DNA of 64,000 nt from Phaeosaccion multiseriatum (taxonomy: Eukaryota; Protista; Ochrophyta, other classes). Location of the stretch: the NCBI GenBank assembly GCA_965112735.1, contig OZ218952.1, forward strand, positions 5,580,001-5,644,000. The letters are read 5' to 3'. Shown in pieces: positions 776-58,600 of this stretch. The notes under the pieces are model-generated. The model was not told where the DNA came from and searched no databases. It worked only from the letters and a program-made list of their open reading frames with translations. Made by a program: the position numbers and the translations under genes. Position 1 is the stretch's first letter, and every line of letters starts with the position of its first letter.

Positions 776-1990
776 ATGTGTCAATCATCGACACGGGATG
801 GATCTAGATACAGATAGAAGGGTGTCGCAGAACCCACAGTCCAGCCTACGACGACAATTGTCAATTAGACTACTACTAGACAAGTGGAGCGACTGGTACG
901 TGTATTAATACAGCTTAACCCGAGAGCAAGCCTGCTGGCTGCCCTGTCCTTACACAACCAGGCTCTGAGAGAGGAACCCAGGCTCCTGAGCGACGTGCGT
1001 CAGTACTTCGCATATCACAAATGGCATCGACCTACAAACATCCCCAATGCCTAACCCCAGCTTCTTGCTCCCCCCTCATTAGCACTATATACTACTGTAA
1101 CCCCCATACTGCCACACTAACTAACACTACTGCAACTGCATACTACCCCGCTAACTAATACTTAAACTACAAGGCCTAGAAGCCAAAATGCGAGGGATAA
1201 TACTGCAGCTCCAGGAAAGAGGGCAGCCCAGCACCACTCCCAATCGGCCTCCTCCTCTTTCTCCTTCTTATCTTATCACACATTTCAAGCACACCCTTTC
1301 ACTTCCCCCCCCCACCCTCCTGTTTGCTTTCCCTCTGTCTCTTGCTTTTCTACATATCCGCCAATCGCCGCTGGGCTTCCAAGCAAACTTGTTCGACCTC
1401 ACGCAGTTGTGTTTTCAGCATTCCCTCGTCTTCTGGGTGGATCTGTATCCATCGGCGCTCAAAGTCCGCGTATCGAAAAGGTCGATTGTCGTTCTCAACG
1501 TACGCGGTTCCATTCTCCATAAAGCTGTAGCGCTTCTTGTCTGGAAACCCCCCATCATCTCCCTTGTTGTAGTTGAGTCGATGATAGTTGGCGCAATCCA
1601 AGGGCTCAACAAGAGTGCGGTAGTTGTTGGCCCTAGTCAACCATGTGATGTGAGGTGCGTCTGTCCAGGGAAATCGAATGCTTGCATTCCACCACCTCTC
1701 TTCGTCCAAAGGCGGGTTTCCCTTGAGAGCCCCGTCCCAAAATGCAGCCAATTCTCGGCGTGCCTCCTCAGCCTCGGTCTTCCTCTGGTCATTTTCCCCG
1801 AGGCGATACACATGAACGTGCCACGGCACCTCCGAGCCCTCTTCTGTCAAGGCGGACGCCTCCAAGGACTCCTTAATGGACCCTAGTCTGGCCAAATTTC
1901 TTGTCATCCTTTCCTCCTCCTTATTGCGCTTGTTCTTGTCGATGGTGCCCATGATGTACTCCAAGGTAAAAAAAGCAACCAACCATCTCC
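776..1990. repeat. Segmental duplication, copy A (paralog of ~10389-11800)
   Basis: 776-847 matches 10389-10460. 1204-1223 matches 10512-10531. ~1220-1895 matches ~11030-11703 at very high identity, with ~225 bp identical from ~1313. Similarity decays through ~1990. Confidence 0.95.
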
Positions 1991-2018
1991 CACCTCCTCT
2001 ACTATCCTTCTCCGTCAT
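1350..2018 (-). CDS. Stand-alone EDS1-family EP-domain-like protein with short hydrophobic N-terminus (paralog A, 222 aa)
   Basis: Open, apparently intronless ORF. ARRELAAFWD...WLTRANNYRTLVEPLDCANYHR...AYVENDNRPFRY matches the EP-domain pattern recalled for EDS1 (KRAELAGVFD...WIKLATRYRRLVEPLDIANYHR...PYMKRGRPTRY). No lipase domain in the ORF. Confidence 0.8.
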   Translation of the reverse strand: MTEKDSRGGGRWLVAFFTLEYIMGTIDKNKRNKEEERMTRNLARLGSIKESLEASALTEEGSEVPWHVHVYRLGENDQRKTEAEEARRELAAFWDGALKGNPPLDEERWWNASIRFPWTDAPHITWLTRANNYRTLVEPLDCANYHRLNYNKGDDGGFPDKKRYSFMENGTAYVENDNRPFRYADFERRWIQIHPEDEGMLKTQLREVEQVCLEAQRRLADM

Positions 2019-2348
2019 ACCCTCCTACACAGGAGCTAAGTAAAGCTAAGGCTACGAACTCCCCTCTCCTTTTTTTGATGATTCCTTCTCGAAATGGCGT
2101 TTTCTTCCCTGCGTTCACCTCCCTCCCCTTTCCTGTGACTGCGATTACTGCGATGTGGCCCTGCTCCATCTCTCTCTCTCCTCATTTGTTGTTGCTTCTC
2201 GGTTTTGAGATGTTGCTAGTGAGAGAGGGGAAAAAAAAAAAATCAGTTTCACAGTTTCAGAAAAAAAAAGGGGGGAGAAGCCCTCATGTTCTCATATTCA
2301 GGTGTTCGTGCCCCCCCTTCTCACTCTTTCCTTTCCCTCTTCAACCCT

Positions 2349-2525
2349 CTGCTATCTGCTATCTGCTATCGCCGGCGCCAGCCGGCATGCTATCTTCTAT
2401 CACCAGCGCCAGCCGGCGTGCTATCTGCTGTCCGCTGGCGCCCCTTCCCCTCCCCTATTGAGCTATCGCTATCGCTAGTGCCGGGAGCTATATCGCCGGA
2501 GCCACCCGGCACGCTATTCGCCAAT
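2349..2525. repeat. Cluster of GCTATC and GCCGGC motifs (degenerate ~29-bp units)
   Basis: ctgctatc x3, gccggcgccagccggc, accagcgccagccggc, gctatcgctatcgcta. Confidence 0.6.
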
Positions 2526-2590
2526 GGTGATGCGGCCCGAAGGGTCGATAGCTGAGCTGACGGCGATACCTCAAAACCGTGTCAGGGGTC

Positions 2591-2682
2591 GCACGCACAC
2601 ACACACACACACACACACGCACGCACACAGACACACACGAACACACACACGCACGCACACACACACACACGCACACACGCAC

Positions 2683-2717
<35 letters not shown>

Positions 2718-2762
2718 CACGCACACGCACACACAGACACAAAAACAAACACACATATACGC
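2591..2762. repeat. (CA)n microsatellite
   Basis: Direct observation. Confidence 0.98.
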
Positions 2763-3556
2763 AGGCGTTCGGGGGGAGGCGGGAAGTCCGTACAGGATTC
2801 AAACTTGCGTGAATACCTCTGTTGGCGGTTGGGCGGGAGAGAGGAGCGGAGAGCAGAGCAGAGCAGAGACGACAGGAACGGGGTAGAGCGAGCGGCAACG
2901 GGGCAGAGCGGTGGTAGCCTACAGGGAGGAAACAAGACCCATGAATGTCGATGAATGGGAGGAGAGACCTTGAGCAGGCCGGCAGGAAAAAGTAGGAGGA
3001 GACAAAAGGACAGCACACGCCAACCTTCAACAAGCAAGGCCTAGACCACGCTGCTCCAGCCATCTGATTGCGACGGGAGGTGTAAAGCTCAGGAGCGAGA
3101 GGAGGAATTCCCGTGCTGATGCCACACGACTTTCTGCCGCAGCCAGCTGGCTGTTCCCTCGGATCTGAAGCAAGGGTGAAATGCGCCGTGTGTGAGGAGA
3201 CCTGGAATAAGGAGCTGGCAGCATCCAGGCGGGGTGGTGGGTGTGGCTGGTGCGTTCAATTGGCGACGATTGCAGCGCACGAGCCTCGGATGGTCGCCTC
3301 TTTATGTCTTATCGCTCCTCCAAGAGGCCGGACTTCCTCCTTCTGGCCCACTGGCTGCTATTCGCTCGCCGCAACAGCAGGCAGCACACCCCGCCCGCTC
3401 ACGGGTCACATCGGAGCCCCGTCTGTCGCGCCAGACCTTGCTTGCTTGGAGGAGACGATGCTTCTTCGCCTCCATGATCTGCTGTAGCTAACAAGCGAGC
3501 CTCGCCCCCCCACCCCGTAGCAAGGCACTTGCCACCCAGAGACACACCGAGGCCCT

Positions 3557-3567
3557 CTCTTCTCTCG

Positions 3568-3630
<63 letters not shown>

Positions 3631-3643
3631 CTCTCTCTCTCTC
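3557..3643. repeat. (CT)n microsatellite
   Basis: Direct observation. Confidence 0.98.
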
Positions 3644-4446
3644 GGCTGATGCTCTTACACCTGCGAGCAAGGCGCTTCACCCCTTTTGCGGCCCTGCGCT
3701 GGTGGCACCGAGGGAAAGGCGGCTCTTGACCATCTTGATAAGAACGGAATGACTGTGGCAGTGTGGCTGGTGGTATCGACTTGAGAAGGTGTAGCTAGGG
3801 CCTGCCTCAATCCTTCGGCTCGTGGCACTCTCGCTCGCTCACGCAGCACAGCACGCCTTGGTGGGAATGCGGCGGAGCGGTGGGGCTGTGAGGCTTGAAG
3901 GCCCCCAATCGCAGAGACGTGGCAAGCGTGAGTGGACTACAACTTGTACTCCGCTGACTGTTGATTTACAGTGATACATAGAAAGGGAAAGTTCAAAAGT
4001 ACAACACCACACACACCAACACCACACCAACACCAACACCATACTTCATACCACCACACAACAACTCACGCCACTTACACGGAAAACATCAAGCACAAAA
4101 TAAAACAAAAGAGAGGGTCCGTGCGTCAACCACTTCTCAGTTCACACCCACGAAAGGGAGAAGGTTTCGTTGCTTCACTGAGAGGAAGCGTCCCGAGCGA
4201 CTCACTGGCTGGGCCCGTCTCTCTGAGTGACGAGTCAGCGACTGCATTGGAGACAGACTTGCCAATAGGCACTGGCATGGTGATGTCGCGCCACTTCGCA
4301 TGGAGCGAGCCACTCACCCCGCGGGCCTCACTCGCAGAGCAGGAAGGGTAGAGTAGCGGTAGGGCAGGGCGGAGTAGCATGCTTTCCCTGCGCGTGCTTG
4401 TTTGCCTCTGGCTCAAAGCCGACTGGCGAGCAAGACGAAGAGAGGA

Positions 4447-9699: not shown

Positions 9700-10090
9700 G
9701 GCCGATCGTAAGCTCATTCAAGCTCATAATATATGCCAATATGAAATGCTCACAACATGCATCTCGTCGCCTTCTCGGTCTGTGGAGGAGTGAGTAGTAG
9801 GATTATAAGTGTGATCAGTACGAGTGTGAGGGGGGTAGGATGAGGCAATGAACCGACCAACTGACCGACCTGCCCCTCACTCCCTCCCGCCCTCGCTCCC
9901 TCCCCTGCCTCTCTCCACCCCCCCCCCACCCCACCCCACCCTCTCCCTGCCCCCCCTCCTTCCCTCCTTCTCACCTGGCGAGTACCCAAGGTTGAGGGGC
10001 ACCCTAAGTCAGTGAGTTTGACCAGTCCGTCCTTGGTAGTGACTAAGTTAACGCCCTTGATATCTCTGTGCAGCACGTCCTCTCCAACAC
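9700..10090 (-). pseudogene. Decayed CDC15/MAP3K-epsilon-like Ser/Thr kinase fragment (subdomains VIb-VIII)
   Basis: Acceptor followed by VLE, then a frameshift to VLHRDIKGVNLVTTKDGLVKLTDLG (family: HRDIKGANILTTKxGLVKLADFG). The next exon EGDEMHVVSISYW resembles VVGTPYW and is followed by a stop. No N-lobe is seen. Confidence 0.75.
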
Positions 10091-10242
10091 CTGGAAAATG
10101 AATGTCCATACAGTGGACGAAAGATCGACATCGATATATAAGATCGACGTCGACAGGCCTGCCTGCCCGCTCCACACCCGTGAGCTTCACCTGCCGCCTT
10201 TCGCCTTACTCTTCTCTTTGGGGGCTTGCCGCCTTCAACAGC

Positions 10243-10388: not shown

Positions 10389-11800
10389 ATGTGTCAATCA
10401 TGGACACAGGATGATAGATACAGAGAGAAGGTGTCGCAGAACCCACAGTCAGTCCAGCCTGGCACGCGGCCTTGCCTTTGTCAAGCCTTGTCATGGTCCG
10501 AAACGACCACGTGCAGCTCCAGGAAAGAGGGTACCCCTCGAATATCTTCCCACTGAGTCCACCAGTCCCCCGGGGCGGGTGGGTGGGAGAAGATTCACCG
10601 CGTTAGCTGCTTTCAGGGCAGCGACTCCTATCCTCACTTCCACTCCACCCCACCACACCACAGTCCTCTTATGCCACACCCTCAAGTTTCTAACCCCCGC
10701 CCTCCCTTGCCAGTCCGTGAAAAATCGTTTTCCCACCGGGGTACGAAAACTCTCCTTTCACGGACTTCCCGGTCGGATACCTCCCCCCCACACTCACAAA
10801 TGCCCACACAATAGTATTACAATTAGGTAAAAGGGGGTACTTGCCAGTCGGAAGAGGACGAGTCTTTGCGCACCCGGCACCGCCCCTATGACGGTGCCGC
10901 GCACACTCCAACTCAACTGGATTTCCAGTCCCTCAACTCGTCCCTCCGGCTCGCCTCTCCCCCCCCTCACCTTTCCCTCCCCACCCCACTACTCCATCAT
11001 ACTCCGCATCCCCAGTCTTTGTCTGCCCCAGGGCAGCTCAGCACCACTCCCAATGGGCCTCCTCCTCTTTCTCCTTCTTATCTTATCACACATTTCAAGC
11101 ACACCCTTTCACTTTTTTCCACCCTCCTGTTTGCTTTCCCTCTGTCTCTTGCTTTTCTACATATCCGCCAATCGCCGCTGGGCTTCCAAGCAAACTTGTT
11201 CGACCTCACGCAGTTGTGTTTTCAGCATTCCCTCGTCTTCTGGGTGGATCTGTATCCATCGGCGCTCAAAGTCCGCGTATCGAAAAGGTCGATTGTCGTT
11301 CTCAACGTACGCGGTTCCATTCTCCATAAAGCTGTAGCGCTTCTTATCTGGAAGCCCCCCATCTTCTCCCCTGTTGTAGTTGAGCCGATGATAGTTGGCA
11401 CAGTCCAAGGGCTCAACAAGAGTGCGGTAGTTATTGGCCCTAGTCAACCAAGTGGTGGCCTGTCGAGGTGCGTCTGTCCAGGGAAGGCGGGTCAGCATCC
11501 ACCCTCTCTCTTCGTCCAAAGGCGGGTTTCCCTTGAGAGCCCCTTCCCAAAATGCAGCCAATTCTCGGCGTGCCTCCTCAGCCTCGGTCTTCCTCTGGTC
11601 ATTTTCCCCGAGGCGATACACATGAACGCACCACGGCACCTCCGAGCCCTCTTCTGTCAAGGGGGACGCCTCCAAGGACTCCTTAATGGACCCTAGTCTG
11701 GCCATACATTTTTGAGTTGCCTTGTAGTTCTTCGTCAGATCCTCGGAGAATTCTCTCTTGTCCTTGCCGATGGTGTACACGAAGGTAGATACAGCAATCA
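10389..11800. repeat. Segmental duplication, copy B (paralog of 776-1990), interrupted by a ~0.5 kb insertion
   Basis: Direct alignment with copy A. Confidence 0.95.
10532..11029. mobile_element. 498-bp insertion relative to copy A, flanked by an AGGG direct repeat, with internal hairpin
   Basis: Copy A: ggaaag-aggg-cagccc (1220-1223). Copy B: ggaaag-aggg(10528-31)-[tacccc...ctgcccc]-aggg(11030-33)-cagctc. Hairpin agtccgtgaaa...tttcacggact at 10712-10766. Confidence 0.5.
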
Positions 11801-11855
11801 CCAGCCCCGCCACGCTCAGCGTCAACTCTATGCTTTGCTTTGTAATTTTCTTCAT
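11157..11855 (-). CDS. Stand-alone EDS1-family EP-domain-like protein with N-terminal TM helix (paralog B, 232 aa)
   Basis: Open intronless ORF. TM-like LTLSVAGLVIAVSTFVYTI followed by KDKR. ARRELAAFWE...WLTRANNYRTLVEPLDCANYHR...RPFRY. Only 262 bp separate it from the TRRAP ATG, leaving no room for an upstream lipase domain. Confidence 0.82.
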   Translation of the reverse strand: MKKITKQSIELTLSVAGLVIAVSTFVYTIGKDKREFSEDLTKNYKATQKCMARLGSIKESLEASPLTEEGSEVPWCVHVYRLGENDQRKTEAEEARRELAAFWEGALKGNPPLDEERGWMLTRLPWTDAPRQATTWLTRANNYRTLVEPLDCANYHRLNYNRGEDGGLPDKKRYSFMENGTAYVENDNRPFRYADFERRWIQIHPEDEGMLKTQLREVEQVCLEAQRRLADM

Positions 11856-12117
11856 TTTTCTCCTTCCTTTTTTGTTTGTTTGTTTGTTTGTATCTGTGAT
11901 TTCGGGATGAGCAACGGCGCAACCTCCCTTACGTAAGCTTCACGGTTATTGTTTTCACCGTCTAGAGTTCTCCTTGTTGTACAAGACCAGACAGCCGGCT
12001 AAGCAGCGAGGCTTTCTTCCGACCATTCGACTTGCTATGACCCTCTGAGGACTCTGCGCCGAGTTTGCTGCTCGGAGCCGGCTTTGCGAGGTCCAAACAA
12101 GACAGTTTGGGCTGACT
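11856..12117. promoter_or_regulatory. Probable compact bidirectional promoter (EP paralog B / TRRAP)
   Basis: Head-to-head ATGs at 11855 (-) and 12118 (+). Inference from geometry only. Confidence 0.5.
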
Positions 12118-15100
12118 ATGAACTTCGAGGTGGCCAAGGAAAAGCTCTTGTCACCCAACTTGACGGAGGCGCTCCAGGTGGGTGATAGGGGTTTGGTGCA
12201 CAGCCAGGTGGTGAGGGTGCTCCTGCAAAGGGTGCGCTCTCTTGCCGGTGGCGGTTCTTGGAGTGAAGAGAGCAAAAAGCATGGGAGGGGGGGGGGGGGC
12301 TAATCACAGGCCAACCGCTGGAAGTGTATCTAGTCTTTGACACTGCTCATTTGCCGCCACTCCACCGCATATTCCGCCTACCTCTCGCGACGCCACTACT
12401 GCTGTCTCTCCAGCGACTCACTCTCACTCTCTTCATCCACCCTTGGCCCCTGCTGCTGCTGCAATCCCTGGTAGGTCGCCACTGATCTTCGGGAGCGCAT
12501 CGAGATTGTGCACACAAATGTGTTTGGCAACTTCCTCAAGCACCTCCTACCGGCGTTTACGTAAGTGCGCAGGCCATTGCACCCGCCATTACAGCCCCCC
12601 TCTGGATGGCCCCTCTCACCCTCTGACTTGACGCCTCCTTGCAAACCTCTCGACCCCCTCCGTCGCCGCTCTGCTGTGCCGTACCACCGCGCCGGACTCT
12701 CCTCCTCGTCCTCGTGATCTATTCTCCCTCCTCTTCCTCTCCTCCATCACCCTCCTGATCCATCCCTCCACCTCCATCTCTACCCTCCTCATCCTCCTCT
12801 CTCCCCCCCCTATCTGCCCTGCTGCGCCCTCCCCCAAAAGGGAGCTGCTGCGCACACGTCTAGCGCCTCAGCAGCACTCCGACAACGAGACGCACCGCTT
12901 CAGGCACACCATCTTGGAGATATTGCACCGCCTGCCCAACAATGACCTGCTCAAGCCCTACAATAGGGACCTGCTGCTGCTCGTCATGGACGTGCTCAGG
13001 TAGAGTAAAAGCAAAAGTCGAATCAAGCACAAAGGGGTGGAGCACAGAGGGGTGGAGCACCACGACAGAGGGGGGGTGGCGCCGGGCTTGATCCAAGAAC
13101 GCAAGGCATATGGGGATAGGGCAAGACCTGCTGACCAAACCCCTTCCCCGGCCCGGGCCAACATGCCGACTGACCGTACTACGCATCATGGCGGTCTTCA
13201 CGGCTCTCTCTCGAATGTGCAATGTGCTGTGAATGACCTTGTCCCTTCTCCTTCCCCTCCCGCCTCGGCCCCGTATGCAGGAATGACAACGAGGAGAATG
13301 CCCTGACCTGCCTGCGCATCGTGTTCGACCTGCACAAGAACTACAGGCCCTCGCTGGAGGGGGAGGTGCAGCCCTTCCTAGACGTGAGCAAGCAAGCACG
13401 AGAGCCCCCTCTACCCTTCTTGTTCTGTTGTCTCGTCTCTGCCGCCTGCAAACACGCTCGCTCTCATCGTCCCCAACCTCTCTCCCCCTCCCTCCCCTCC
13501 CCGTGCGTACCACAGGTGGTGCGTCAAGTGTACTCCAACCTCAGCGCCTCTGTGCAGGACATCTTCAGCAAGGAGGGCATCGCCAACGCCACCAATGCGG
13601 CGGAGGCGGCCCGCCACAGAGCGAACGCAGCCTCGGCAGCGGCAGCGGCGGCAGCAGCCAATGCAGCGAATGCAGCCAATGCAGCGGCGGCAAACGCGAC
13701 CAACGCAGCTGCAGCAGCAGCAGCGGCTCCTGCTCCTGCCCCTGCGCCGGCGACCTCTGCTGAGGCCCCTACTACTCCGCAGAATGGGGCTGCCCCAATG
13801 GCGTCTGCTACCGCCCCTCCTGCTCCTGCCCCTGCTTCCGTCGGTGCCGAACCGATGACCACCGGCGCCTCCACGGCAGTCGCTGTCGCCCCGCCTGTAG
13901 CAGGAGGAGGAGGAGCTCCACCACCGGCACAGGCACAGCCCCCTTTGGCAGCACCACTAGGAGGGGCGGTCGCTGGTCAGCCCCAGGCAGGAGCGGCAGT
14001 AGCACCAGTGGCACCGGTGGTAGCAGCCCCTCCCGTGCAGCCGCCGGGCACTGGCACTGTGACCGGCACTGTGCTGCTCAAGAGCCTCATGTCCTTCCGG
14101 GTGCTGACAGAGTGCCCGCTCATCGTCATGCTGTTGTTCCAACTGTACCCCAAGTACATCAATCAGAACATACCCAACCTCATCCCCCTCATGATACAGG
14201 TGGGCAGAGGCTGATTGGACGGTCTGTGCCTGATATGACTGACAGACTGACTGACTGACTGACTCAATGATTGACTGACACCAGATACTGACCGACAGAT
14301 TGGTGGCGACCACGCTTCCTCTGCTTGCTTAAGTGTGCTATCCGCAGTGTGACACCATCGTTTCCCCCCCTTCCGTTCCTGGCCACCGTTCACCAGATGG
14401 CAATGAGTGGCATTATCGCGTTCTGTGCACAAACTCCTCCTGACCCGCTCGCTCCTGTCTTTCTCTGTATATATATATGTACGTTGTGTATCTCTCCCCC
14501 CCCCCCTCTCTCTATCTCCATCTCTCGTCTCTCTATCCACCTGCAGACGCTGAGCCTGGCCCCTCCTCTGGGTCCGCCGCCGGCAGTGCTGCACACGCGT
14601 TTCCGAGAGCTCGTGGCGTGCCAGGTCAAGACTCTCTCCTTCCTCACGTACCTGCTCAGGGGCTTTGCGGAGCACATGCGACCCTACGAAAAGGCCATCA
14701 GGTGCGTGTGTGTGTGTGTGGTGTGTGCGCGCGCGTGTCTGTGGACAGGTGGAATGAAAGTGTCTCTGTGTACCCTCACCATCTCTTTCATCTCTCTCAC
14801 TCGATCCGCCCTCTCTCCCTCTCCGCATACCCGACCAACAGCAATAGCGTGGTGGGACTGATGCGTAACTGCCCGCCGGACGCGCCCTCCACACGCAAGG
14901 AGCTGCTCGTGGCCACCCGGCACATCCTCGCCACTGACTTCAGAAAAGGTGCGCACTGCCTGCCCAGATGCCTGCCTCTGCCCATACGCCTGCCTTCTTG
15001 TGCTTGCTTAGGGCTAGGGTCGTCTGAGGTCAGCCTCTCCTGCCAGCCTCTAGTGCGTGCGTGTGTATCCGCCCTTCCCCCGTCAGTGTTGTGCCCTATC

Positions 15101-20600: not shown

Positions 20601-22676
20601 GGCACCCGTGGAGGGCGGGGCAGGCGTACGGAGGCAGCAGGGGTCCTCTTCCTCTTCCTCCTCTTCCTCCTCCTCCTCCTCTTCTGCCGCAAGTGGGGGT
20701 GCTTCGTCTTCCTCGCCCCCTTCTTCCTCTTCCTCCCGCACCGGACCCATGCTCACCACAGGGGAGATCAGCACCGTGGCAGGCAGCGCTGCCCCTCCGG
20801 TGCTGCCTCCCATCCCCTGCACACAGGGGGTACTCAAGGCCTCTGTCAAGCGTCACAAGCGCCTGGCCTTTGACTTTTTGTGCGCGGTGCTGAGTGACAT
20901 GGTGGCTCTCCATGCCTCACCGCTGGCGCCGGAGGACATTCGAACCGCCACGAGGCAGATGGAGCTCGACGCCGGCGGGCAAGAGGTGAGCCACAGGAAG
21001 GAAGGAAGGAAGGAAGGAAGGAGTACGGGCAAGGCAATGTAAGGGGGTAGAGTATTGGTTAAGAGAAGATTGGAGGGCACACACAGAGAGAGGCCCACAG
21101 AGGCCCACAGAGGCCCACGCTGACTTTCGTCTCTCCCGCGCTCTCTTCTTTTTGGGGGCCCGCGGCTCGTGTTTTTTCTTTCCTTTTTTGCTGTTACCCA
21201 ACCAAACCCTCCCTCTCTCCCTCTCTCCCTCCCTCCCTCCCTTTCTCTTTCCCTCTCTTCCTTCCTTCCTTCCTCATCCCACCTCGCACAGTGGCTCGAA
21301 GCGAAGCAAGGAGAGTCTCAGGCCCTCCCAGGCGTGGTGCGCTTCCAAAACCAATTTGCGTACAAGCGCCGTATGAACACCCGCCTGCTGCAGTCCCTCC
21401 TCGTCATGGGCGTCGACAAGGAACTAGGGGGAGAGGCACGCCAGCTCATGCGCGGTCTGGTGCTTCATGTTGTGAGGCTGACCACTCCCCTCCCTCCTTC
21501 TCAGCAGCAGCAGAAGCAGCAGCAGGGAGGGGGAGGGGAAGGGGCGATGGAGGTGGACAGCAGCCCTGCCCCAGGAAGTGGTGGTGATGGTGATGATGGA
21601 GATGGAGATGTCAAGATGGGGGGGCAGCAGGAGCAGTCGCAGGAGGAGGAGGAGGAGGGCAGGCAGTGGCTCCCTCCGGGGTTCGCAGACTTGAGCGTAC
21701 CACCACGCAGAAGGGCCAGGAGCAGCAGCGGTGGTGGCAGTAGCAGCAGCAGCAGTAAGTCAAGCAGCAAGCAGAGCCACGCCTTCAACACCGCTGCCAC
21801 GTGTGACTTCTCGCCCCTGCCTGCCACAGAGGCCCATCTGCACGGACTCAAATGTGTGACTCCGGCAGAGCTCACAGATGCCGTAGTGGAGGGATTGTGT
21901 GATCCGAGGGCGGCGGTGCAGAAGTCCTGCCTGGAGATGGTGGCCTTTATTGTACGCAGTTCGGCGGTGTGGGATGAGCCGCTGCTGGAGGAGCAGAAGG
22001 AGGAGGGTGAGGAGGACAAGGATGGCAAAGGTGGGGGTGGGGTTGCGACTGCCAAGGTCAAGGTGGAGAAGGAAAAGGAAAAGGAGAGAGAGGAGGAGGA
22101 GGAGGGGGAGGAGGAGAAAGAGAGTGGACCTGTGGCAAGTTCCATGTCCTCTGTGGCGGCGGCGGCGGCAGCAGCGGCAGCAGCGGCTGGCGGGCCCTCT
22201 CCCTCCGCCAGGAAGGAGGAGGAGAAGGAGGAGGAGGAGGTGGAGAAGACGAGGACGAGGGACCGCCTGCCATGGCACGGTGTCGTGTTGGTGCACAGTC
22301 TCGTCGCCAGCCTGTGTCGGTCGTGCTACGAGCAGCAGTGGCGGCGTAAGCTGCTTGCGTGCCGAGGCATGACGGTGTTGTGTCGCTTGCTGGACGCTAG
22401 GGCGGTGAGGGCCTTTGAACTGCCTCTCATGGCGGCCCTTCTCTTTGTGGTCAAGGTGAGTGATGACAGGAAATACGTGGGAGGAGAGTGGAGGGGGGTG
22501 GGTAGGGGAGGGGAGTGGTCTATCCATTGTTTCCTTCCCGCCCCCTCCCAACCCTCAAAGCCAAAAGACCAAGGCCTGACTCTGACTCGCCCCCCCCCCC
22601 CCCCACGCGTGCGCGCTTTTTTTCTGTGTGTGTGTGTGTCTCTGTCTCTGTCACTCTGTCGTTCTCTCTCTCTCTA

Positions 22677-22707
<31 letters not shown>

Positions 22708-22808
22708 CTCTGTCACTCTCTGTGTGTGTGTCTCTCTCTCTCTGTGTGTGTGTCTCTCTCTCTGTGTGTGTGTGTCTCTCTCTGTCACTCTCTGTCACTC
22801 TCTGTCGT

Positions 22809-22840
<32 letters not shown>

Positions 22841-25800
22841 CAGGACCACCCCCGCGAGGTGTCTCTGGCCACAGTGGAAGACGTGCACGCCGCGGTGTAC
22901 GCCCTCTTGGCCAAGCGGTATGGAGTGGAGAAAAGCACTCGCAACCAATGGCGACGATCCTCCACACAAGAGGGTGATACTGATGCTGCTGCTGCTGCTG
23001 CTGCTGGTGCTGGTGCTGCTGCTGCTGGTGCTGGTGCTGGTGCTGGTAGTGCAGGAGCTAAGGGCAGTGGGAAGGGGCAGCAGGCTCCGGCGGCAGAAGG
23101 GGCGGACGGGGGGGGAGACGTCACTATGGGTGAAGGTGAGTGGGGTAAGGACGGGGGCGGGGCTGGGGAGGCGATATATCTGTGAGTGGGCCTGGGGAGG
23201 GACAGGTAGCTCAGGTCTCTTAGAACGGAGCGTAAGGTCTGGTCTGTCTAGTTGTATGCAGCACCTTCCTTACGGCTTCCTTAACCGCTGCTTCCTTTCC
23301 CGTCTCATGCGCTACATACCACATATCTTCTTGCCCGTCTGCAGCTGGCGAGGGAGGCAGCGCAACACCAGCAGTTGGTGATACAGCAGACGCAGCCGCC
23401 ATGGCAGCCTTCGACGCTCTGGACATCGACCCCGCTGTGGTGGCGCAGCTTGCCTCCGAGCTCAGCCACTTCAAGCACGCCGTCCGGAGCACAGCCAAGA
23501 GGTGAGTTAAGCCACACGCACAACCACACGCACACGCACAGCGACACGCACAACCACACGCACAGCCACAGACACAGACACAGACACAGGCATAGGGGAG
23601 GCAAGAGGGAGGAAGAGCACACGCCAGCCACCGTCATCACACCTCTCTCCTCCCATGCATCCACCTCACGCCCTCTGCGTTCCCCCACCCCTCTCTCCCG
23701 TGCGTCCGTCCGTGCGTGCGTGCGTGCGTATGTGTGTCTATTTGAATGTTTGTGTGTGTGCGTGCGTGCGTATGTATATGTGTCTATTTGAATGTTTGTG
23801 TGTGTGCGTGCGTGCCTCCCTCCTTCAACAGGGCGCTGGAGCTCATTGCGGGTGCCAAGGACGTATCCGTGTCCGAGATCCTGGTACCCTCCAGGGAGAG
23901 CTTCTCTACCGCACTCTTCGCCAAACAGGTGGGTCAGGACACACACGCTCTCTCTCTATGCGTGTTTCTGACCTGAGGTCCTCTTCTCTCTCTCTCTCTC
24001 TGCCTGCATGTGTATGTTTATGTCCTGACACCCTCGTGTCTCTCTCTCTGTCTCTCTCTCTGTCTCTGTGTGTGTGTCTACACTCTCAGCTGCGCACCCT
24101 GCAGGCCAGTCACAAGATTGGCCTGCTCGAGGCCTGTGCATACGGTCTGCTGCTCAAGCCCCCCTCGGGAAAAGCCCCGTCAGGATCGACAGCAGCAGCA
24201 GCACCAGGAGGAGGAGGAGGAGAAGGAGGAGAAGGAGGAGCAGGAGAAGGAGGAGCAGGAGGAGAGGCAGCGCCGCCGAGTGATACCCCCGCGGGCGTGG
24301 ATGTGAAGCCGCCCGCTCCTGCTGCTCCTGCTGCTCCTGCTGCTCCTGCTACTACTGCTACTGCTGGTAGTGGTGGTGGTGATACGCAGGCTCCGGTTCC
24401 AGCTGTGAGTCCAGGCGGTGGGCTGCTGACTGTGACGGGCGAGGTGATCGGGTTGCTGCAGGACGTGCTGGCCCTGACGGAGGCGAGTGAGAACGACCCT
24501 TCCTCGGGTTTCTCTTACTCCTCTTCGTCCTCGTTGAGTTCATCGGCCTCTCCGGCCCTCTATGAAGCCTTGCCCGGGAGTAGATCCCCCCCCAGCCACT
24601 TCTCGTACCCCAGACGGTGAGAGAGGGAGGGAGAGAGGGTGTGGGGGGGCGAGGGGGGGGGGAGGGGGGGAGGAGAGGGACGGAGGGGAGGGGGGGGTAA
24701 AGGGGGAGAAAGAGGGTGGGAGAGAGAGGGAGGGAAGGAGAGAGGGAGGAATAGAGAGGGAGGGAGGAATAGAGGGAGGGAGGAATAGAGGGAGGGAGGA
24801 ATAGAGGGAGGGAGGAATAGAGGGAGGGTGGAAGAGAGAAAGGGGTGGAGAGGGACCTTCGCTTCTGCCTCGTGGCCTTACGCTCTTCCCTCCCTGTACC
24901 CCTGCACGCCTCGTCTCCTCCCCTGCAGGACCTCTATTCGGGACCTGCCCTCGCCGTCGGAGCTGCCCCATCAGGTGAGTGAGTGCTTGAGTGAGTGAGT
25001 GAGTGAGTGAGTGATTGATTGAGTGAGCATGTGAGTGAGTGAGTGAGTATGTGAGTATGTGAGTGAGTGAGTGAGTGAGTGAGTGAGGAAGTGAGTGGGG
25101 GAAGTGGGGGAGAGGTAGAGTGAGTGACTCAAGTTGACTCAAGCGAAGCGAGGGAAGAGAGACCCCTGCTGATGCTATTCACTACCATCCACTGCCATCC
25201 CTTGCCATCCGCTTGCCTCAGGTGCAACTGCGCATCAGCGCCATCCGCTTGATGCACGCCGTCATTGTGTGCAGCCCGGAGGACATGAGCATGCACGGCA
25301 AGCACAAGGTCCGTTGATCAGTACCTGGTGTTAATCAGTACCTGGTGTTAATCAGTACCTGGTGTCAGTCAACCAGTCCGTGTCTGTCAGTCCAGTCAGT
25401 CAGTCAGTGAGTTAGTGAAATCCGTACCTATGCCAGTCAGTCAGTCAGCGATACTCCTCCTCTTGACTCGTGCCACCACCCTTCTCATCCACTGCCATCC
25501 ACTCTACGCTCCCCCCCCCCCCCAGGAGCTTCGCAACCGCTGCATGGCTCTGTTCTTCAAGAGCCTCACAAGCCGCGCTGACCCGGTCGTGGAGGCCGCG
25601 CAGGCAGCGCTAGAGCAGGTGCGGGGTGTCAGGACCGGGCAGGACAGGGCAGGGCAGACGGTGTCAGGACAGTTTGTGTGGGTGCATGGGTCCATAGGGC
25701 AACTTGACAACTGGCAAAGGACAAATGCCAGCTGGCGACCACCTTCACTGTCCGTAAATGTCCAACTCACTCACTCATGACGTCAACCAACACACTACCA

Positions 25801-30361: not shown

Positions 30362-31761
30362 CTTCCTTGGTTTTCTCTCTTTTATTCTCTCTTCCTCGAC
30401 AGGAGCTCATCAAGTTTGCTTGGAACCACCTCAAGGTGGAGGACGGCACTTCGAAGCACTGGGCCTACGTCAACGTGTGTCAATTCATCAGCGTGTACGA
30501 CACCCCCCCCAAGATCATCTTGCAGGCGAGTCACAACTGGCGAGGGAGGGGAGGAGAGTGAAGTGGTGGGGAAGGGGAAGGGGAAGGGGAGAGGAAAGGA
30601 GGGGACGGGACGGGACGGAAGGGGAGGGGAAGGTAGGGGGAGAGAGTGGGTTGTGATAGGGTAGTGCTGGGTAGGGATTGTGCTTCACCGTAATACCGTG
30701 TGTGTATTTATACCGTGCCGGTCTTTGTTCGCATCAATCGTCCAGCGCCTGCTTCGCTCACACCATACCCCTTCTTTGTGTGTGTCTTTCCTCCTCTCTC
30801 TCTCTCTCTGTGTGTCCCTCTCTCTCGTTTGTCCCCCCTCCCCCTCCGTATCACCAACAGGTGTACGTGGCCCTGCTGCGCACGTACCAAACAGAGGTCA
30901 AGCACCTTGTCCGCACGGCGCTCGACATCATCGTGCCCGCCCTCCCTCGCCGCCTTGCCCTCAATGACTTCATCAAGGCCATCAAGTGGACGAAGAAGAT
31001 CATGTATGAGGAGGGCCACCACCTGCCGCAGGTAAAATCTTGGGTTGAGCCAATTGTGATACCAGCTATGTCTATCTACCTTTCTTGTCTACTTGTGTAT
31101 CCGTTGTGTCTGTTGTGTGTCCGTCTGTCTAGTTGAGCCAGTTGTGATGTGAGCTGCCCTTAACACTGTCTGTCTATGCGTCTGTGTGTCTGGTGTGTAT
31201 GGTGTGTCTGTGAGTCTTTCTCTGTCTGTTTATCCCTATCCCTCTGTCTGTCTATCTATCTGTCTGTCTCCCTTGAGCTTCGAACTGTCTGTAGCCCGTT
31301 TGCCTTGCGCAGCGTGTGGCGTTTGGTTGAGCGTGCGTTTCCGTTCCGTCAATGTATTTCGCTCTGCACCTAAGCTCCCTCTGTCCCCCCCCCCCCCCCC
31401 CCGGCCTGCTGCTCTGTGTCCTCTCTCTCTCTCCCTCTCTCTCACTCTCTCTCTCTCTCGCACACACACACATACAGCTGATCCACATGTGGCAGTTGGT
31501 GGTACGACACCCCGTACTGTTTTACGGCTACCGCAGCCAATTCATCCCCCAAATGGTCAACTCACTCAACCGCCTCGGCCTTCCGCCCAACTGCCCGGTG
31601 GAGAACCGCCAACTCGCCATTGGGCTAGCAGATGTAATGGTGTCGTGGGAGATACATCGCCAGCAGCGCACGGCCTTCGCGCAAGAGACCGCGGCCAAGG
31701 CCCGTATGACTGCGGCTGCCACAGCTGCTAGTGCTGGTGCATCTACCGTACCACCAACTGG

Positions 31762-31799
<38 letters not shown>

Positions 31800-34700
31800 T
31801 GGCTCCAGCTGCTGGCAGTGCCGCCTCGCCTGCCGTGGGCGACAAGAGAGGTGCCCCAGAGGACGGCAGTCACACGGGCACGGACTCCAACAAGACGGCC
31901 AAGCTGGGGGCGGCCTCCTCTCCGGCGGCGGCTGCTGCTACTTCAGCAGGCAGTAGCCCCCCTGGGACAGGCGGTGTCCCCCCTGGGACGACGCAGCAGC
32001 CCCCACCCGGGGTGGGCCCTGGGGCTGTACCCCTGCCTGGCACCCCTGCTGCCGCTGCCCCTGCCCCTATGACTGGAGCCCCTGCCCCCGCCGCTGCCCC
32101 TGCTCCTGCGGTGCCTGCTGCAGCTCCAGCCTCATCCGCAGCCCCGCCAACTGTGAGGCACACGTCAGGCGAGGACGACTTTGTGCTGTCTCCCACTATG
32201 GTGGAGATGGTCAGCAACTTCCTTATGCGATTGAGTCTCCTCGCCGCCAGCAGCAAGGACGCGGCAGTCAGCAGGTCAGTTCAAGAGGGAGAGAGGAAGG
32301 AAGGAAGGAAGGAAGGGGAGGGAGGGAGGGAGGGAGGGAGAGAGAGACAGGGGGGGGGGGGGGAGGGAGGGAAAGGGGTCACGGGAACGAACCGAAGGGA
32401 CCAAAGGGCTTTTGGCTGTGCTTCTGTTGTGTTGTGCTTGTTCTCTTCCTCCACCACCCCCCCCAACACCACACTCACCCTCTCGTCCTCCCCCCGCCTT
32501 AGAATGTCGGCTCAGTGTGTGGAGCTCCTCCGCCGCTGCCTTGAGCTGTGGCCTTCCGCAGCTTTGAAGAGCGTATACTTTGACAAGCACGTGTCTGGAG
32601 CCATTGAAACCGCCAAGCAAGAAGCTGCCAAGGAGATGCACCAGGCCCAGGCTGGGGGGGCAGGGGCCAGGGGAGGAGGGAGCGAAGGCTACACCACGAC
32701 TACTGTGGCTCCTCACTTGCCCCTTGCCCTGCTCGAGACCACTGTAGATGTGCTCAACGCCTCCCTCGGACCTCACTCCAAGGCCTCTGCTGCTGCTGCC
32801 GCCGCCGCTGCCGCCAAGGCTACTGCCGAGGCGACTTCCCAGGCCACTGCCACTACCGCTGGTGCTGCTTCGGCGCCCGGGGGAGGGGGTGGGAATGAAA
32901 CGTTGTCCTCGACCTTCGCGTCCTCGTCCTTCTCGGCGTCGCCATTTGACCTGTCGAAGCGCGTGTTGGAGCAGCCCGTGGCGCCCTCCCTTGCCCCCCG
33001 ACCACCGAACAATCTGTTCAAGGAGCTTGTACCAAAGCTTCCGCAGCTCATTGCTCTTTGGTTCGCGGTGGAGGGTGGGGGCAAGAACGGTCTGTCGGTG
33101 AAGTTGTACGCCCTAGTGGCTCGGTTGGCTGAGCTGTACCCGCCTCAGGCGCCTCCGGATTCGTTCAGAGAGTGCGCTTTTTGGGACAAGCTCAGCCACG
33201 CGATGCAGCTACGCATTCAACAAGCTGCGCAAGACAAGGGCGGCTTAGCAGGAGGGGGCGGCTCAGCCTCAGCCTCTGCCTCCTCCTCCTCCTCGAAGCA
33301 GGGGCAGGGAGTGCAGGGGGTAAAGGCGGGGCAGAGGGACAGGGACAGAGAAGCCAACGACGTGAGCGCGTGCGTGGCGCAGCACACAGTGGCAATGGTG
33401 ACGGCGGTGACGGATGTGTGGCCGGCCTTCGCGGAGCAGCACGCAGTGGGCCTGGTGAAGCTCAGCAGGAAGCTCACCACAGACCATGTGGCGGTGCGTG
33501 GGGAGAGGGGCGTGGGTATGTGTGCAGTAGTGTAGAGAGGAACGACTTCTTTTGTGTCTGCCCATATCCCTGACTGACTGACTCACTGACTGACTGACTG
33601 ACTGACTGACTGACTGACTGACTGGCTTGTGGGCGCGGAAGCCGGACCTTTGCGCTGTGACTGCAGAGCTGTGGCTGTGGCTGTATGCCCAACTGCTGTG
33701 ACTGTGACTGGGATTAGAGCTGTGGCTGTGGCGTAGGCTTCCCTCCAGAGGGCCTCGTCTCTACACGCGCCACTGTTGCTTTACTGACCCCCTGCCCATA
33801 TGCCTGTCCATGTGCCTCCCTCTACAGCAAGCCATCCAGACGCGCACTGCGCACGGCGGGCATGTGCCTCAGGGGCTTGGAGAGACCATTGCCAACCTCG
33901 TCATGGGGCCCAGGGTGAGGGAGAGTGGGGGGCCTGACACCCAGTACTACCACGGCCTGACACCTGACACCTGCTACTGCCACTCCTTGATACCTGTAAC
34001 ACTCCAAACACACCTGAGACACACACCTGACACACGTGACGCACATGACACACCTGTACTGCCGCCACCTGCTACTACCTGCTACTGCCTGACACCTGAT
34101 AATTCCCCAGCGCCCAGCGCCTAATCCATACTGCCACTGCCTGCCACCTACTCACTGCCATCCCCTGCCATCCCCTACCATCCATCCATCCATCCATCCC
34201 CTGCCATCCCACCCCATCCCATCCCCGATCAGGTGCTGCCCACCCCCACCATGGGAGTGCTCCACTCTGCCCTGTCCCCTGACTCGTACGACCCCTCTGC
34301 CGATGCGGTTTCGCCCTCCATGAGCACTCTCGTCATGACCGTGCAGCTCCTGGGCAGGTGGGTGTAGTATGTCAATGGGTGGGTGGGTGAGTGGGCTTTG
34401 GGAGGAGGGGAGGGGAAGATGGTTATGAACTCCATCCCTGGTCGGTCTCTGGCGGACCGTCATTCACTGCCATCGTTCACTCACTGCCTTTGGACGGCCC
34501 CTCTACTGCCTTCTGATTCACTCACTTGCCTTGTGATTCACAACTGGCTTAGGGTGACCGCGGGCGGCAAGCTGCCTGATGTGCGAAAATCCTTCAACAC
34601 CGTCGTCAGCGTGTGTTTGGAGAAGAGCGACAGGTGAGTGCGAGAGAGGGAGGGAGTGTGAGGAGTGGATAAGAGGGAGTGTGGCTCCCCTCCTTCCATG

Positions 34701-54930: not shown

Positions 54931-55641
54931 GTAGCACTAGTACGTTGGTAGTCTATTGGTAGGGGCCTGTGAGGCCCAACGTAGACCGAATCCCCTCCGT
55001 CGGCAACATGACCAGCCCTCCCCCTCCCCATCCACTGCCACCCCCCACCCCGCCATCAAGCCCCTGGCCCAACCCCCCCGCTCCCTGTGGGTGATCCGCT
55101 CCCTCCTCCTGCCCGCCCACCCCCAGGCCGAGGCCGACGCCCACCCCCACGGGCAAGAGGCTGACTTTGGTCATTCGGTGCTCCACCACTCGCAGGAATT
55201 GCGTGCTCTCAACGAAGCAGCTCTTGGTCAGAGCGAGCTCATCCTCAAGCTCTCGAAGCTCGATGGAGAGCAGGAAGGCAGGATCTGTCACCGGGGAAAC
55301 CGACACCGCCGCCGCCGCCGCCGCCGCCACGTTTGGCGGGGGGTTCGCGTGAATGTGTGGCTGCGCGTGCGAGTGAGACTGCTGCTGCGATAGGCTCTGG
55401 CCTTGCTGGGCGGCGTGCGGCGGGTGCTGTAGCACCAACGGCTGTGGTTGCTGCTGCTGCTGGCGCTGCTGCATCCCATCTTCACCTCTCATTCCCCGAG
55501 GCAGCGCCGCCCCTCTGTCCCTGTCTGGCCGGCCGTCCCTCTCTCTCTGATCGAAATCCCTGCTGCCGCCAGCCCTCCCTTCTCGCCACGCTCTGCTGTC
55601 CACCCTTTCCCTGTCTTCCCACGGCTGTTTATGCTGCTGGC

Positions 55642-55681
<40 letters not shown>

Positions 55682-58600
55682 ATGCTGCTGCTGACCTTGC
55701 TGTTGGCTCTGCTGCTGACCCTGCTGCGGCTGCTGCTGCTGCTGTGGTTGCTGCGGTCCGAACTTGTGCCCTGGCGCCGGTGACGAGTGGCGTGGCGGGG
55801 CTCCTCCCCCTAACCCTCCCCCTCCTCCCCTCCCCTCTCCGCTCCGCTCGCGAAGGCGTTCCAAGTGGCCTCGCTGCTGCTGCTGTACTACCAACTGTTG
55901 CTCTTGCGGTGAGTGCATGTGTGGGTGGCTGTGCGACCTCTCGTGGCGGCCGCCCCCCCCTCGCTCAGCTGTGCCCCATCCACTGCCATCCCCTCCCGAC
56001 TGGCGACCAGCCTCTCCGCCCCCCCCAGCCTGTGCACCTCCTCCTCCTCCTCCTCCTCCTCCTCCTCCTCGACCAAGCAGCACCTCTCTTTGAAGGCTTC
56101 CCCTCCCTGCACCGCCAGTCGGCGTGCCCCCCGTTGCCCCGCCTGGGGAAGATTGCCGGTAATTGGGGTATCCCTGCTGGCTCAGTCGCTCCTGGCTGCC
56201 CCCCGCCTTTTGCTGCTGGCGGAGTCTATGAGTAACATGGTGCTCGGGCAGTGCCGAAGCTTGGCCTAAATCCTTGGCCGAAGGCACTCCTCCTCCTCCC
56301 CCTCCTCCTCCTCCTCCTCCTTCTCCTCCTCCTCCTCCTCCTCGCTCCCCTCTCCCGTCTCGCTCGTCCCGCGGCGCAAAGCGACTCAACGTGTTGGTGC
56401 TGCTGCCCATCGCCTCCCCGCCTCTATCCCCAACCACGCTTTCTCCACCTTGCCCTTGCCCCCTTCGGTCAAAGCTGCCACCACCGAAGTCGGAGCCAAG
56501 TCCTCTCCTCTCTCCGCTCTGAAACGGCAGCCTCTCCCTCTCTCTGTCTCTTTCTCGTTCTCTCTCTGGCACCCTCGCTCTGTCCCTGTCCCTGCCGTAA
56601 GCAACTTCCCTCTCCCTCTCTCCTTGAAGAGTGGCGGTATCCCTGTATCTTCCTCCCTCCATGGACTCTCCTTCTTCTCTCCCTCTTGCCCCTCCTCCGC
56701 CTCCTCCTCCTCCTCCTCCTCCAAACGAACCTGGTGAGGAGCGTCGATCACGCTGCTGCTCCGGGGAAAATTCACCGTGTTGCTGCGGTAGCCTCGCACG
56801 CTCGTCTTCTCTCAGCACGGGGCCGCCCAACCCCGCTCTCTCTCGCCCTCCATCTCGCTCTCTCTCCCGGCCCCCTCCTCCCGCCAGTCTCTCCCGTTCT
56901 CGATCTCGCCCGTAGCGGAAGCCTCCACCTTCGGAGCCATCGCAGCGCTGCTCGCCCGCTCCGTCCCACATCCTGTCGTCTCTACCATCGCCCCTATTGT
57001 CGTCTCTTTCCCTTTGCTTCGCCTCCATGCCGCCTCCCCCCTCACCGCGAAAGCCCCTCCCCTCCCTCCCTCCGCCCCTCTCTCTGCTGTCTCTGCCCCA
57101 CTCTCGCTCTCTCTCCGGCGACCCTAGCCCAACGCCTCCTCTAAATCCTGCCCCCGCCCCCGCCCCCGCCGCCGCCCGAGGGCCGAAGCCGAAGCCCCTT
57201 TCTCTCTCTCTCTCCCGAGGATCACTAATCGCCGCACCAACAGTGCCGCCTCCTTGCCCCCTCCCTTCTCCCCCCCAAGCTTCGCCCCTCTCTCCCCTCT
57301 CGCCCCTGCTGTCCCTGTCCCTCTGCGGCTGCTGCCCTGCGGACGAAGACGAGGTAGCGGCACTGGCATTCCCAGCCCCGAAAGAGGGCTGATCCCTCGG
57401 AGACGACGGGGGCCTCGAAGCAGGAGCACCCCCTCCTCCCTGCCCACCAAACTCGGCAGTGGGAAGGCGTGGGTTATCACCCCACCTAGACCCCCCCATC
57501 GGGCGCCGATGTCCTCCTTTGGCTCCAGCTTCAGAGGCCCCGCCCATCGCCCCCTGCCCCCCCTGCCTTCTGCCATCCACGAGCCCTTTCTCCCCGCCGT
57601 CCCTGCCCGCCCCTCCCGGTGATTGTTCGGCGACCGTCGCGGCCCTTCTGTTGCTTCCCTCTCCTGGCGAGGCTTGGGGAGGGCCTCGCTCCAGGTGGGA
57701 AGACAGAGAATCTCTACCAGACCCTATCTCTTGTGCCCCCGCTGTGGCCACCACTCCTCTCTCCACCGCCGTGTCGGACCTTGCCGGGCCTGCAGTGGCT
57801 GCGTCTTTGGTGGGCAGCGATGTGGGCTCTCCTGTCCCACCTCCACCGCCAAAAGAAGTCCCAGCAGGACCGGGAGAAGCTGAACCTGTCATGACAGTCG
57901 CCGCTGAAGCACCGCCACCAGAAACCGCCGCCCCTACGCCTGCAATGAGAGTGAACAAAACAAGAAAGACAATGTAAGAGGAGGGGTGGGGTGAGGACGA
58001 TCTTGAGTCCTTGGGAAAACAGCGAGTCGCCCACCGCACATGCATCGCAATCCTGTGTGCTCAAGCCAAGGCCCCCCGCCCTCACCCTCTCGCCCTCTCT
58101 CTGTGTGTACCTACCCTACCTGGCTCCTCGCCCTCTCTCTCTGTGTACCTACCCTACCTGGCTCCTCGCCCTCTCTCTGTGTGTACCTACCCTACCTGGC
58201 TCCTCGCCCTCTCTCTCTGTGTACCTACACTACCTGGCTCCTCGCCCTCTCTCTCTGTGTTCCTACCCTACCTGGCTCCTCGCCCTCTCTCTCTGTGTAC
58301 CTACCCTACCTGGCTCCTCGCCCTCTCTCTGTGTGTACCTACCCTACCTGGCTCCTCGCCCTCTCTCTCTGTGTACCTACCCTACCTGGCTCCTCGCCCT
58401 CTCTCTCTGTGTACCTACCCTACCTGGCTCCTCACCTGTCTCTCCCCTTGCCCGCCCCGCTGCAGAGCTCGGAGAGTCGTCCGCTCTGCGTGGCTTCTTG
58501 CTCACCCCGCCCCCTCCTCCCGAGTGCTGTCCCTCCCCCCCTCCCGCCTCCCCCGCCTGCAATGGCCGCTTGCTGCCTCCCTCACGAAGGCCTTCCTCAC

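Follow-up and report, generated by a model that had tools for sequence, protein, structure and literature searches.

A lipase-less EP-core protein with a candidate membrane anchor, encoded head-to-head with TRRAP in the ochrophyte Phaeosaccion multiseriatum

A 64,000-nucleotide stretch of contig OZ218952.1 from Phaeosaccion multiseriatum (positions 5,580,001 to 5,644,000; hereafter the window) carries two paralogous genes, A and B, that encode proteins related to the EP domain of the plant immunity proteins EDS1, PAD4 and SAG101. The present analysis concerns EP paralog B, which lies head-to-head with a gene for the large protein Tra1/TRRAP. The original prediction, made from the letters alone, had described B as a hydrophobic segment of about 19 residues followed by KDKR and then an EP-like region, and this description was confirmed in each of its parts by the hydropathy and Pfam values given here. 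The features of B are as follows, in window coordinates.

11157 to 11855, minus strand: coding sequence of EP paralog B, an intact ATG-to-stop open reading frame (ORF) of 232 amino acids for which no intron is necessary; Pfam EDS1_EP score 37.4 bits
11769 to 11825, minus strand: candidate transmembrane or signal-anchor helix, residues 11-29, LTLSVAGLVIAVSTFVYTI, with a mean Kyte-Doolittle hydropathy of 2.01
11754 to 11765, minus strand: basic cluster KDKR, residues 31-34, after G30, read directly from the sequence
11163 to 11699, minus strand: predicted EP-core helical bundle, residues about 53-231, equal to about AtEDS1 374-552 and AtPAD4 292-454
11385 to 11450, minus strand: signature stretch W..A..YR.LVEPLD.ANYHR, residues 136-157, aligned to AtEDS1 454-475
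11277 to 11291, minus strand: RPFRY, residues 189-193, in which R189 corresponds to AtEDS1 R490 and R192 to the cavity arginine AtEDS1 R493

The Pfam match (PF18117, E = 2.6e-9) pairs residues 86-166 of B with profile positions 26-91 of 211. The gathering cut-off of this profile, 23.1 bits, is exceeded by B, by A and by all four relatives found in databases. When B was compared with PDB sequences by phmmer, PAD4 and EDS1 were matched through the signature stretch. A family profile lengthened the alignment through RP.RY, with E values of 4e-7 for OsPAD4 and about 3e-6 for EDS1, and its sole PDB matches were EDS1, PAD4 and SAG101 (E = 4e-7 to 1.6e-3). Five residues of B (V147, E148, P149, D151 and R189) do not vary among the 33 sequences aligned, of which 12 are algal-type and 21 are from plants, and eight positions are nearly invariant, among them P112, W136, A153, Y155, R157, P190 and Y193. 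Residues of B were mapped to AtEDS1 by way of the Arabidopsis EDS1 exon on contig L043. By this mapping, R490 and R493 are both kept, and K478 is possibly kept as R162, in a loop where the alignment is uncertain. In a MAFFT alignment that included plant EP exons, B stops after the helix that is aligned to the plant S.FWA.VEE helix. On these alignments, the EP region of B corresponds by homology to about two thirds of the plant EP domain, counted from its start. A query of the ESM Atlas with B led to hypothetical proteins of phages, at 0.90 and low recognition, which we took to be chance or helix-driven matches.

Predicted structures point to the same family. AlphaFold2 models of B had a predicted local distance difference test score of 67 with six family sequences, and of 78 with a predicted template modelling score of 0.70 with 33 sequences (12 algal-type sequences and 21 plant EP exons). 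Foldseek gave the first 14-17 places exclusively to EDS1-family chains at a probability of 0.85-1.0, albeit with E values of merely 0.02-0.6. Among 48,161 representative chains searched with VIA-align, AtPAD4 (7xey_B) had a Z score of 12.9 over 142 residues at 3.1 Å, OsPAD4 scored 12.5 and AtSAG101 10.8, while the next unrelated chain scored 7.0; the EDS1-family alignments span 142-155 residues with root-mean-square deviations of 3.1-4.2. Residues about 27-228 of the model correspond to AtEDS1 374-552, OsEDS1 395-553 and AtPAD4 292-454, and the structural alignment halts at about EDS1 552-555. A hidden intron in the low-confidence loop at residues 113-126 was considered and ruled out, since the sole GT..AG pair there spans 29 nucleotides; it is also disfavoured by the insertions and deletions between A and B, all of which are multiples of three.

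Relatives of B are few. A word-indexed protein search with B gave zero matches, B itself included, and a scan of bacterial and archaeal genomes found no relatives. Exhaustive phmmer comparison with 1.84 billion cluster representatives, a database size at which plant EDS1 proteins drop below significance, matched two proteins, to which a profile search added two. Family members scored E = 2e-30 to 3e-59 in the profile search, and pairwise E values with B were 8e-13 for the metagenome protein P0003 and 9e-15 for the Trebouxia model P0009. Cluster look-ups place relatives in trebouxiophyte green algae, where they include an EP-core relative of 161 amino acids in Coccomyxa viridis (CAK0731504.1) and a protein of 230 amino acids in Trebouxia sp. 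C0006 (KAL0050610.1) from which the hydrophobic helix is absent. The Coccomyxa, Trebouxia and metagenome relatives P0001-P0004 are short and lipase-less, and have their C-terminus where B has its own. B likewise shows the hallmarks of a stand-alone EP core: a length of about 150-230 amino acids, the motifs VEP[LI]D[CI]A and [DN].R..(R)Y, and no lipase domain. It is only 26-42% identical to the trebouxiophyte EP-like proteins, and differs from them in that some of these relatives are soluble and one branch appears to be fused to a TIR domain.

Metagenomes scanned with the pattern VEP[LI]D[CI]A yielded 48 loci, nearly all of them seed-plant EDS1 or PAD4; the non-plant loci were L006, L007 and L014. 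Upstream of the Trebouxia-type loci L006 and L007, no TIR or transmembrane exon was recognisable. In a maximum-likelihood tree, whose deep forks are weak and in which long-branch artefacts are likely, A and B share a long branch of their own that is nested in no green-algal clade. The longest branch in this tree belongs to L014 (positions 186-665 of a 1-kb metagenome contig), a very divergent EP-core ORF of 160 amino acids that continues beyond the position at which B ends. Our literature searches found no paper on an anchored EP domain, a TIR-EP fusion or a non-green host.

The hydrophobic helix recurs within this family. P0003, which is of green-algal type, is a single ORF of 226 amino acids on a 22-kb contig; it carries the helix ALSITSFAISLATFLFSMI (mean hydropathy 1.89) and is collinear with B from the helix to the C-terminus. 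Coccomyxa-type contigs from three samples (L002:679-1380, L055:1978-2715 and L056:~500-1290) have a helix-coding ORF, with a mean hydropathy of 2.4-2.8, directly upstream of the EP ORF. This helix ORF is in the same frame as the EP ORF and is homologous to the N-terminus of P0003, and one conserved TAA stands between the two; the NCBI model of the C. viridis protein starts past that codon. The arrangement could reflect read-through, a split gene or a decaying anchor. A 57-nucleotide intron that would join the two ORFs in L002 was rejected, because its donor is missing in L055 and L056 and the segment it would skip is conserved coding sequence in P0003. On several occasions the helix was lost or severed from the EP region, as paralog A, Coccomyxa and the soluble Trebouxia model show. 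As judged from these comparisons, B is a member of a small algal EP-core family, and because its anchor is intact it counts as a new architectural variant within that family.

The segment at residues 11-29 is the 19-residue hydropathy maximum of B and exceeds the usual threshold of 1.6. In the AlphaFold model it is a helix continuous with the first EP helix. The original prediction had described an architecture unlike that of soluble plant EDS1, which is borne out: B is of EP type, has no lipase domain and carries a hydrophobic helix near its N-terminus. Its further argument, that the positive-inside rule makes the EP domain face the cytosol, fails for B itself, in which the helix is flanked by +3/-1 charges in the 10 residues before it and +4/-4 in the 15 residues after it, a net of zero. 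The same argument holds for the relatives, since the helices of P0003, L002 and L055 have +0 before and +3 after, a signature of N-out, C-in insertion, and these flanks favour a cytosolic EP domain. Known EP domains are all nucleo-cytosolic, and known TIR products are cytosolic. From the relatives and this localisation together, we lean towards a cytosolic EP domain in B, at about even odds overall.

Paralog A gives a second view of the same gene, and two features describe it.

1350 to 2018, minus strand: paralog A, 222 amino acids, 81% identical to B; passes Pfam EDS1_EP
11030 to 11705, minus strand: block shared by A and B at about 95-100% identity, comprising B codons 51-232 and about 125 nucleotides of 3' flank

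The counterpart of the shared block at locus A is 1222-1895, and codons 171-232 are identical in the two genes, whereas 5' of the block identity goes down to 50-78%. This pattern probably reflects an old duplication plus a later gene-conversion tract. Read depth in the block is twice the baseline, and loose contig ends lead from it into locus A. Both paralogs stay open, with a pN/pS ratio between them of 0.48 in the shared block and of 0.61 in the part 5' of it. The edges of the conversion tract are sharp, and one of them coincides with M51, an internal ATG of B (MARLGS...). Paralog A has an in-frame remnant of the helix, WLVAFFTLEYIMGTI, which is no longer membrane-competent because it contains a glutamate and has a mean hydropathy of only 0.89. 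An A:B pair, if formed, would combine one soluble and one anchored protein, given this loss of hydrophobicity in A.

Neither A nor B has a lipase match. The idea that the transmembrane helix of B replaces a lipase domain had to be abandoned: upstream of A (2019-4446) the ORFs are all microsatellite-like and of low complexity, the one that was scanned against Pfam had no match, and a lipase-like domain occurs in none of the non-seed-plant relatives found. Because these relatives are all without it, the lipase-less form appears to be the normal state of the family outside seed plants.

On its 5' side, B faces the TRRAP gene.

11856 to 12117, no strand assigned: spacer of 262 bp between the divergent B and TRRAP ATGs; a possible bidirectional promoter, spanned by contigs of DNA runs
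12118 to 12177, plus strand: predicted first coding exon of TRRAP, an ATG and then a GT donor; predicted from sequence, homology not being its basis

The B start codon ends at 11855 and the next plus-strand ATG is at 12118, which confirms from coordinates the ATG-to-ATG spacing of 262 bp stated earlier. The neighbour was confirmed as Tra1/TRRAP through Pfam Tra1_ring matches in large downstream exons, at 21169-22977 (E = 1.8e-10) and 31352-33535 (E = 6.9e-32); its predicted first exon presumably resembles plant TRA1 N-termini. The proposal that no lipase exon could be spliced in upstream of B stands, as B starts 10 residues before its helix and TRRAP begins 262 bp away on the opposite strand. 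Public DNA runs of two studies yielded contigs that hold locus B, and in one B-specific contig (11675-12721) the helix-coding part and TRRAP exon 1 are physically joined. Such contigs cross both the spacer and the TRRAP intron and are thus uninformative on transcription. Within the spacer, directly upstream of the B ATG, lies a (GTTT)n/(CAAA)n microsatellite (11857-11901), which was skipped as a repeat in read mapping.

A link between EP cores and TIR domains comes from two green-alga-like contigs, L001:850-2592 (a JGI metagenome) and L054:1175-2966 (a Logan contig from another sample), on which TIR-like, linker and EP-core exons lie on one strand. The upstream exons resemble a plant-type TIR domain and contain the motifs YDVFLSHSG, VVVLS.DFVRG.WCMWEL with the usual glutamate, IV.PYFWDL and W...IDKLCSL.G, followed by E[ED]L..RIVAAL. 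With the L054 upstream ORF as query, the PDB gave 13 matches to E = 1, every one a TIR domain, in two collinear segments; they include AbTIR, plant TIRs, L6, RPP1, RUN1 and TRAM. The nearest named ESM Atlas clusters are likewise TIR. The first TIR exon by itself had no match in Pfam or PDB. Three in-frame GT-AG introns connect the TIR, linker and EP exons in L001 and L054 with identical junction peptides. The exons have lengths of 318/333, 126/126, 207/207 and 303/303 nucleotides and are 75-92% identical, while the introns (147/151, 156/142 and 135/125 nucleotides) differ by non-multiples of three and are 67-71% identical. Conserved exons and differing introns form the pattern expected of a single TIR-EP fusion gene, and the two contigs appear to encode such a fusion from a green-alga-like organism.

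B resembles the EP domains of EDS1, PAD4 and SAG101 in that it is homologous to them over about 150 aligned residues, by sequence and by predicted fold, and has in common with them the motifs R.ELA.FW[DE], LP, W..A..YR.LVEPLD.ANY[HY]R and RP.RY. Unlike these proteins, B ends at about AtEDS1 552, three helices short of the full domain, has a hydrophobic segment near its N-terminus, belongs to a host outside seed plants, and has no N-terminal lipase-like alpha/beta-hydrolase domain bearing the partner-binding helix (LLIF in EDS1). Because the lipase-like domain is missing, the EP domain is incomplete and only one of the three cavity residues compared is kept, B falls outside the EDS1 family proper. 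A further hallmark of that family is a heterodimer that binds TIR-made pRib-AMP/ADP or ADPr-ATP and recruits the helper NLRs ADR1 or NRG1. Wagner and colleagues reportedly found in 2013 that plant EDS1 dimers are driven mainly by the lipase-like domain interface, so in lipase-less B co-anchoring or some other interface would have to take its place.

Proteins with P450-type anchors in the endoplasmic reticulum, or with Tom20/OEP7-type anchors in outer membranes, are N-terminally signal-anchored. In general terms B is like them: its N-terminal segment is very short, its single helix of moderate hydrophobicity is followed at once by a basic cluster, and most of the protein lies C-terminal to the helix. 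B differs from them in the three lysines that precede its helix, and these make orientation and target membrane unreadable from sequence.

The homology of B, its architecture and its genomic layout are firm, and so is its fold in so far as models predict it. The explanation that best accommodates them as a whole is that B is a membrane-anchored, truncated EP protein, likely cytosolic, and a candidate receiver of TIR signals; we judge it to have an even chance of being correct. B would be a small single-pass protein whose signal-anchor helix inserts in the membrane, holding the truncated EP bundle (residues about 30-231) at the membrane surface, most likely on the cytosolic side. The conserved basic face formed by RP.RY could help to bind a phosphorylated nucleotide made by TIR enzymes. 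Closing a cavity as in EDS1-PAD4 would need a second EP surface, which might be supplied by another B or by soluble A. B could thus act as a membrane-sited receiver or adaptor for TIR nucleotide signals, perhaps with soluble A.

Several observations count against this explanation. EDS1 R493 and H476 have been treated as ligand-dependent signalling residues (10.1101/2022.05.02.490369), and the position of H476 is L158 in B; likewise, F419 is replaced by T90. The final 70-80 residues of the plant EP domain, about AtEDS1 555-623, are absent. Both AlphaFold models may owe their similarity to the plant EDS1-family structures used in training. The helix is only moderately hydrophobic, its simple summed Hessa-scale value being a borderline +0.5 kcal/mol or so. 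Because its own flanking charges are ambiguous, topology is not fixed by B alone, and a charge count that takes in the acidic residues and the N-terminal amine points to an N-terminus in the cytosol. The helix, though recurrent, seems dispensable to the family, because paralog A and the Coccomyxa genes have lost it or cut it off, and a soluble product of B is possible because M51 sits at the start of the conserved A/B block. Searches of sequencing runs for the locus found DNA runs only and zero RNA runs. As for the TIR link, the Pfam scores of the two contigs (TIR_2 E = 0.003, TIR E = 0.006-0.017) are all under cut-offs, and the fusion is a predicted gene.

Among the alternatives, the one that survives best is that B is an EP-fold protein unrelated to TIR signalling, with its motifs forming the structural core of a helical scaffold at the membrane. 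The conserved positions cluster in one helix-turn (VEPLD), which is plausibly structural, the counterparts of H476 and F419 have changed, and a search for TIR motifs inside the window saw neither motif nor TIR gene. This alternative is harder to reconcile with the apparent TIR-EP fusion on two contigs and with the conservation of the R493-equivalent arginine, and we regard it as possible but rather doubtful.

Translation from M51, or a helix that is dispensable, would instead yield a soluble EP-core protein of ~180 amino acids like A and the Trebouxia and Coccomyxa proteins. M51 is the exact start of the nearly identical A/B block, the helix of A is degenerate, P0009 has none, and in the three Coccomyxa-type contigs the conserved TAA splits the helix ORF from the EP ORF, after which the C. 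viridis model begins. However, scanning ribosomes normally take the first ATG, and that of B has an A at -3 and is followed by 50 in-frame codons without a stop before M51. The B helix is also in frame and collinear with that of P0003, and even A retains a recognisable in-frame copy. A soluble product accordingly strikes us as distinctly unlikely.

We think just as little of the prospect that residues 11-29 form a secretory signal peptide or type II anchor, which would put the EP bundle in a lumenal or extracellular location, away from cytosolic TIR products. The n-region MKKITKQ has a positive charge (+3) of the kind that signal peptides and type II anchors carry, the full charge difference given above points the same way, and T-I-G before K31 satisfies the -3/-1 cleavage rule. 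Yet for a cleaved signal an h-region of 19 residues would be long, the helix of the relatives is preceded by an uncharged flank and followed by a basic one, the EP domains known are all nucleo-cytosolic, and cysteines are few in the bundle.

Very unlikely is a silent or decaying duplicate kept intact-looking by gene conversion from A, for although the 3' 675 bp are nearly identical to A, including 125 nucleotides of non-coding flank, the runs found for the locus are DNA only and B borders on a high-copy repeat at its 3' end, the unconverted codons 1-50 remain open with a helix better than that of A, the A/B insertions and deletions keep the frame and pN/pS is 0.48-0.61 and not 1.

In the field of plant immunity, EP is viewed as a seed-plant invention that is always fused to a lipase-like domain. 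The relationships described here indicate that the EP domain is older and more modular than thought, and they would suggest that seed-plant EDS1 arose when an EP core that already existed gained a lipase-like module for dimerisation. TIR signalling in algae and non-seed plants presents a gap, in that TIRs are present and EDS1 is absent (bioRxiv 10.64898/2026.05.20.726525). The anchored, intact EP core of B, its green-algal relatives and the apparent TIR-EP fusion would be concrete candidates for such EDS1-less TIR signalling. A bolder reading, which we consider unlikely, holds that lipase-less EP cores are ancestral algal receivers of TIR-made nucleotides and that anchored B and soluble A form a cavity at the membrane; under it the partnership of EP and TIR would be older than seed plants, as the apparent green-algal TIR-EP fusion genes suggest.

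Other features of the window touch B less directly. The antisense ORF opposite B (10866-11696, plus strand) has no family match. A scan of the window for bacterial promoters and terminators was set aside because the DNA is eukaryotic. Two long ORFs on the minus strand, 54953-58045 (1030 amino acids) and 58377-60983 (868 amino acids), lie in a region of strong GC skew and have no Pfam match. The ORF at 9750-10190 (minus strand) has a partial kinase match (Pkinase, E = 1.4e-4) that is confined to profile positions 117-150, and low-complexity sequence comes after it. Just past the 3' end of B, and abutting the gene, is a high-copy repeat (10497-10981). In each of the four runs its k-mer depth is 10-45 times that of single-copy sequence, and it shows several variant junctions as well as a 65-nucleotide skip (10630-10696).

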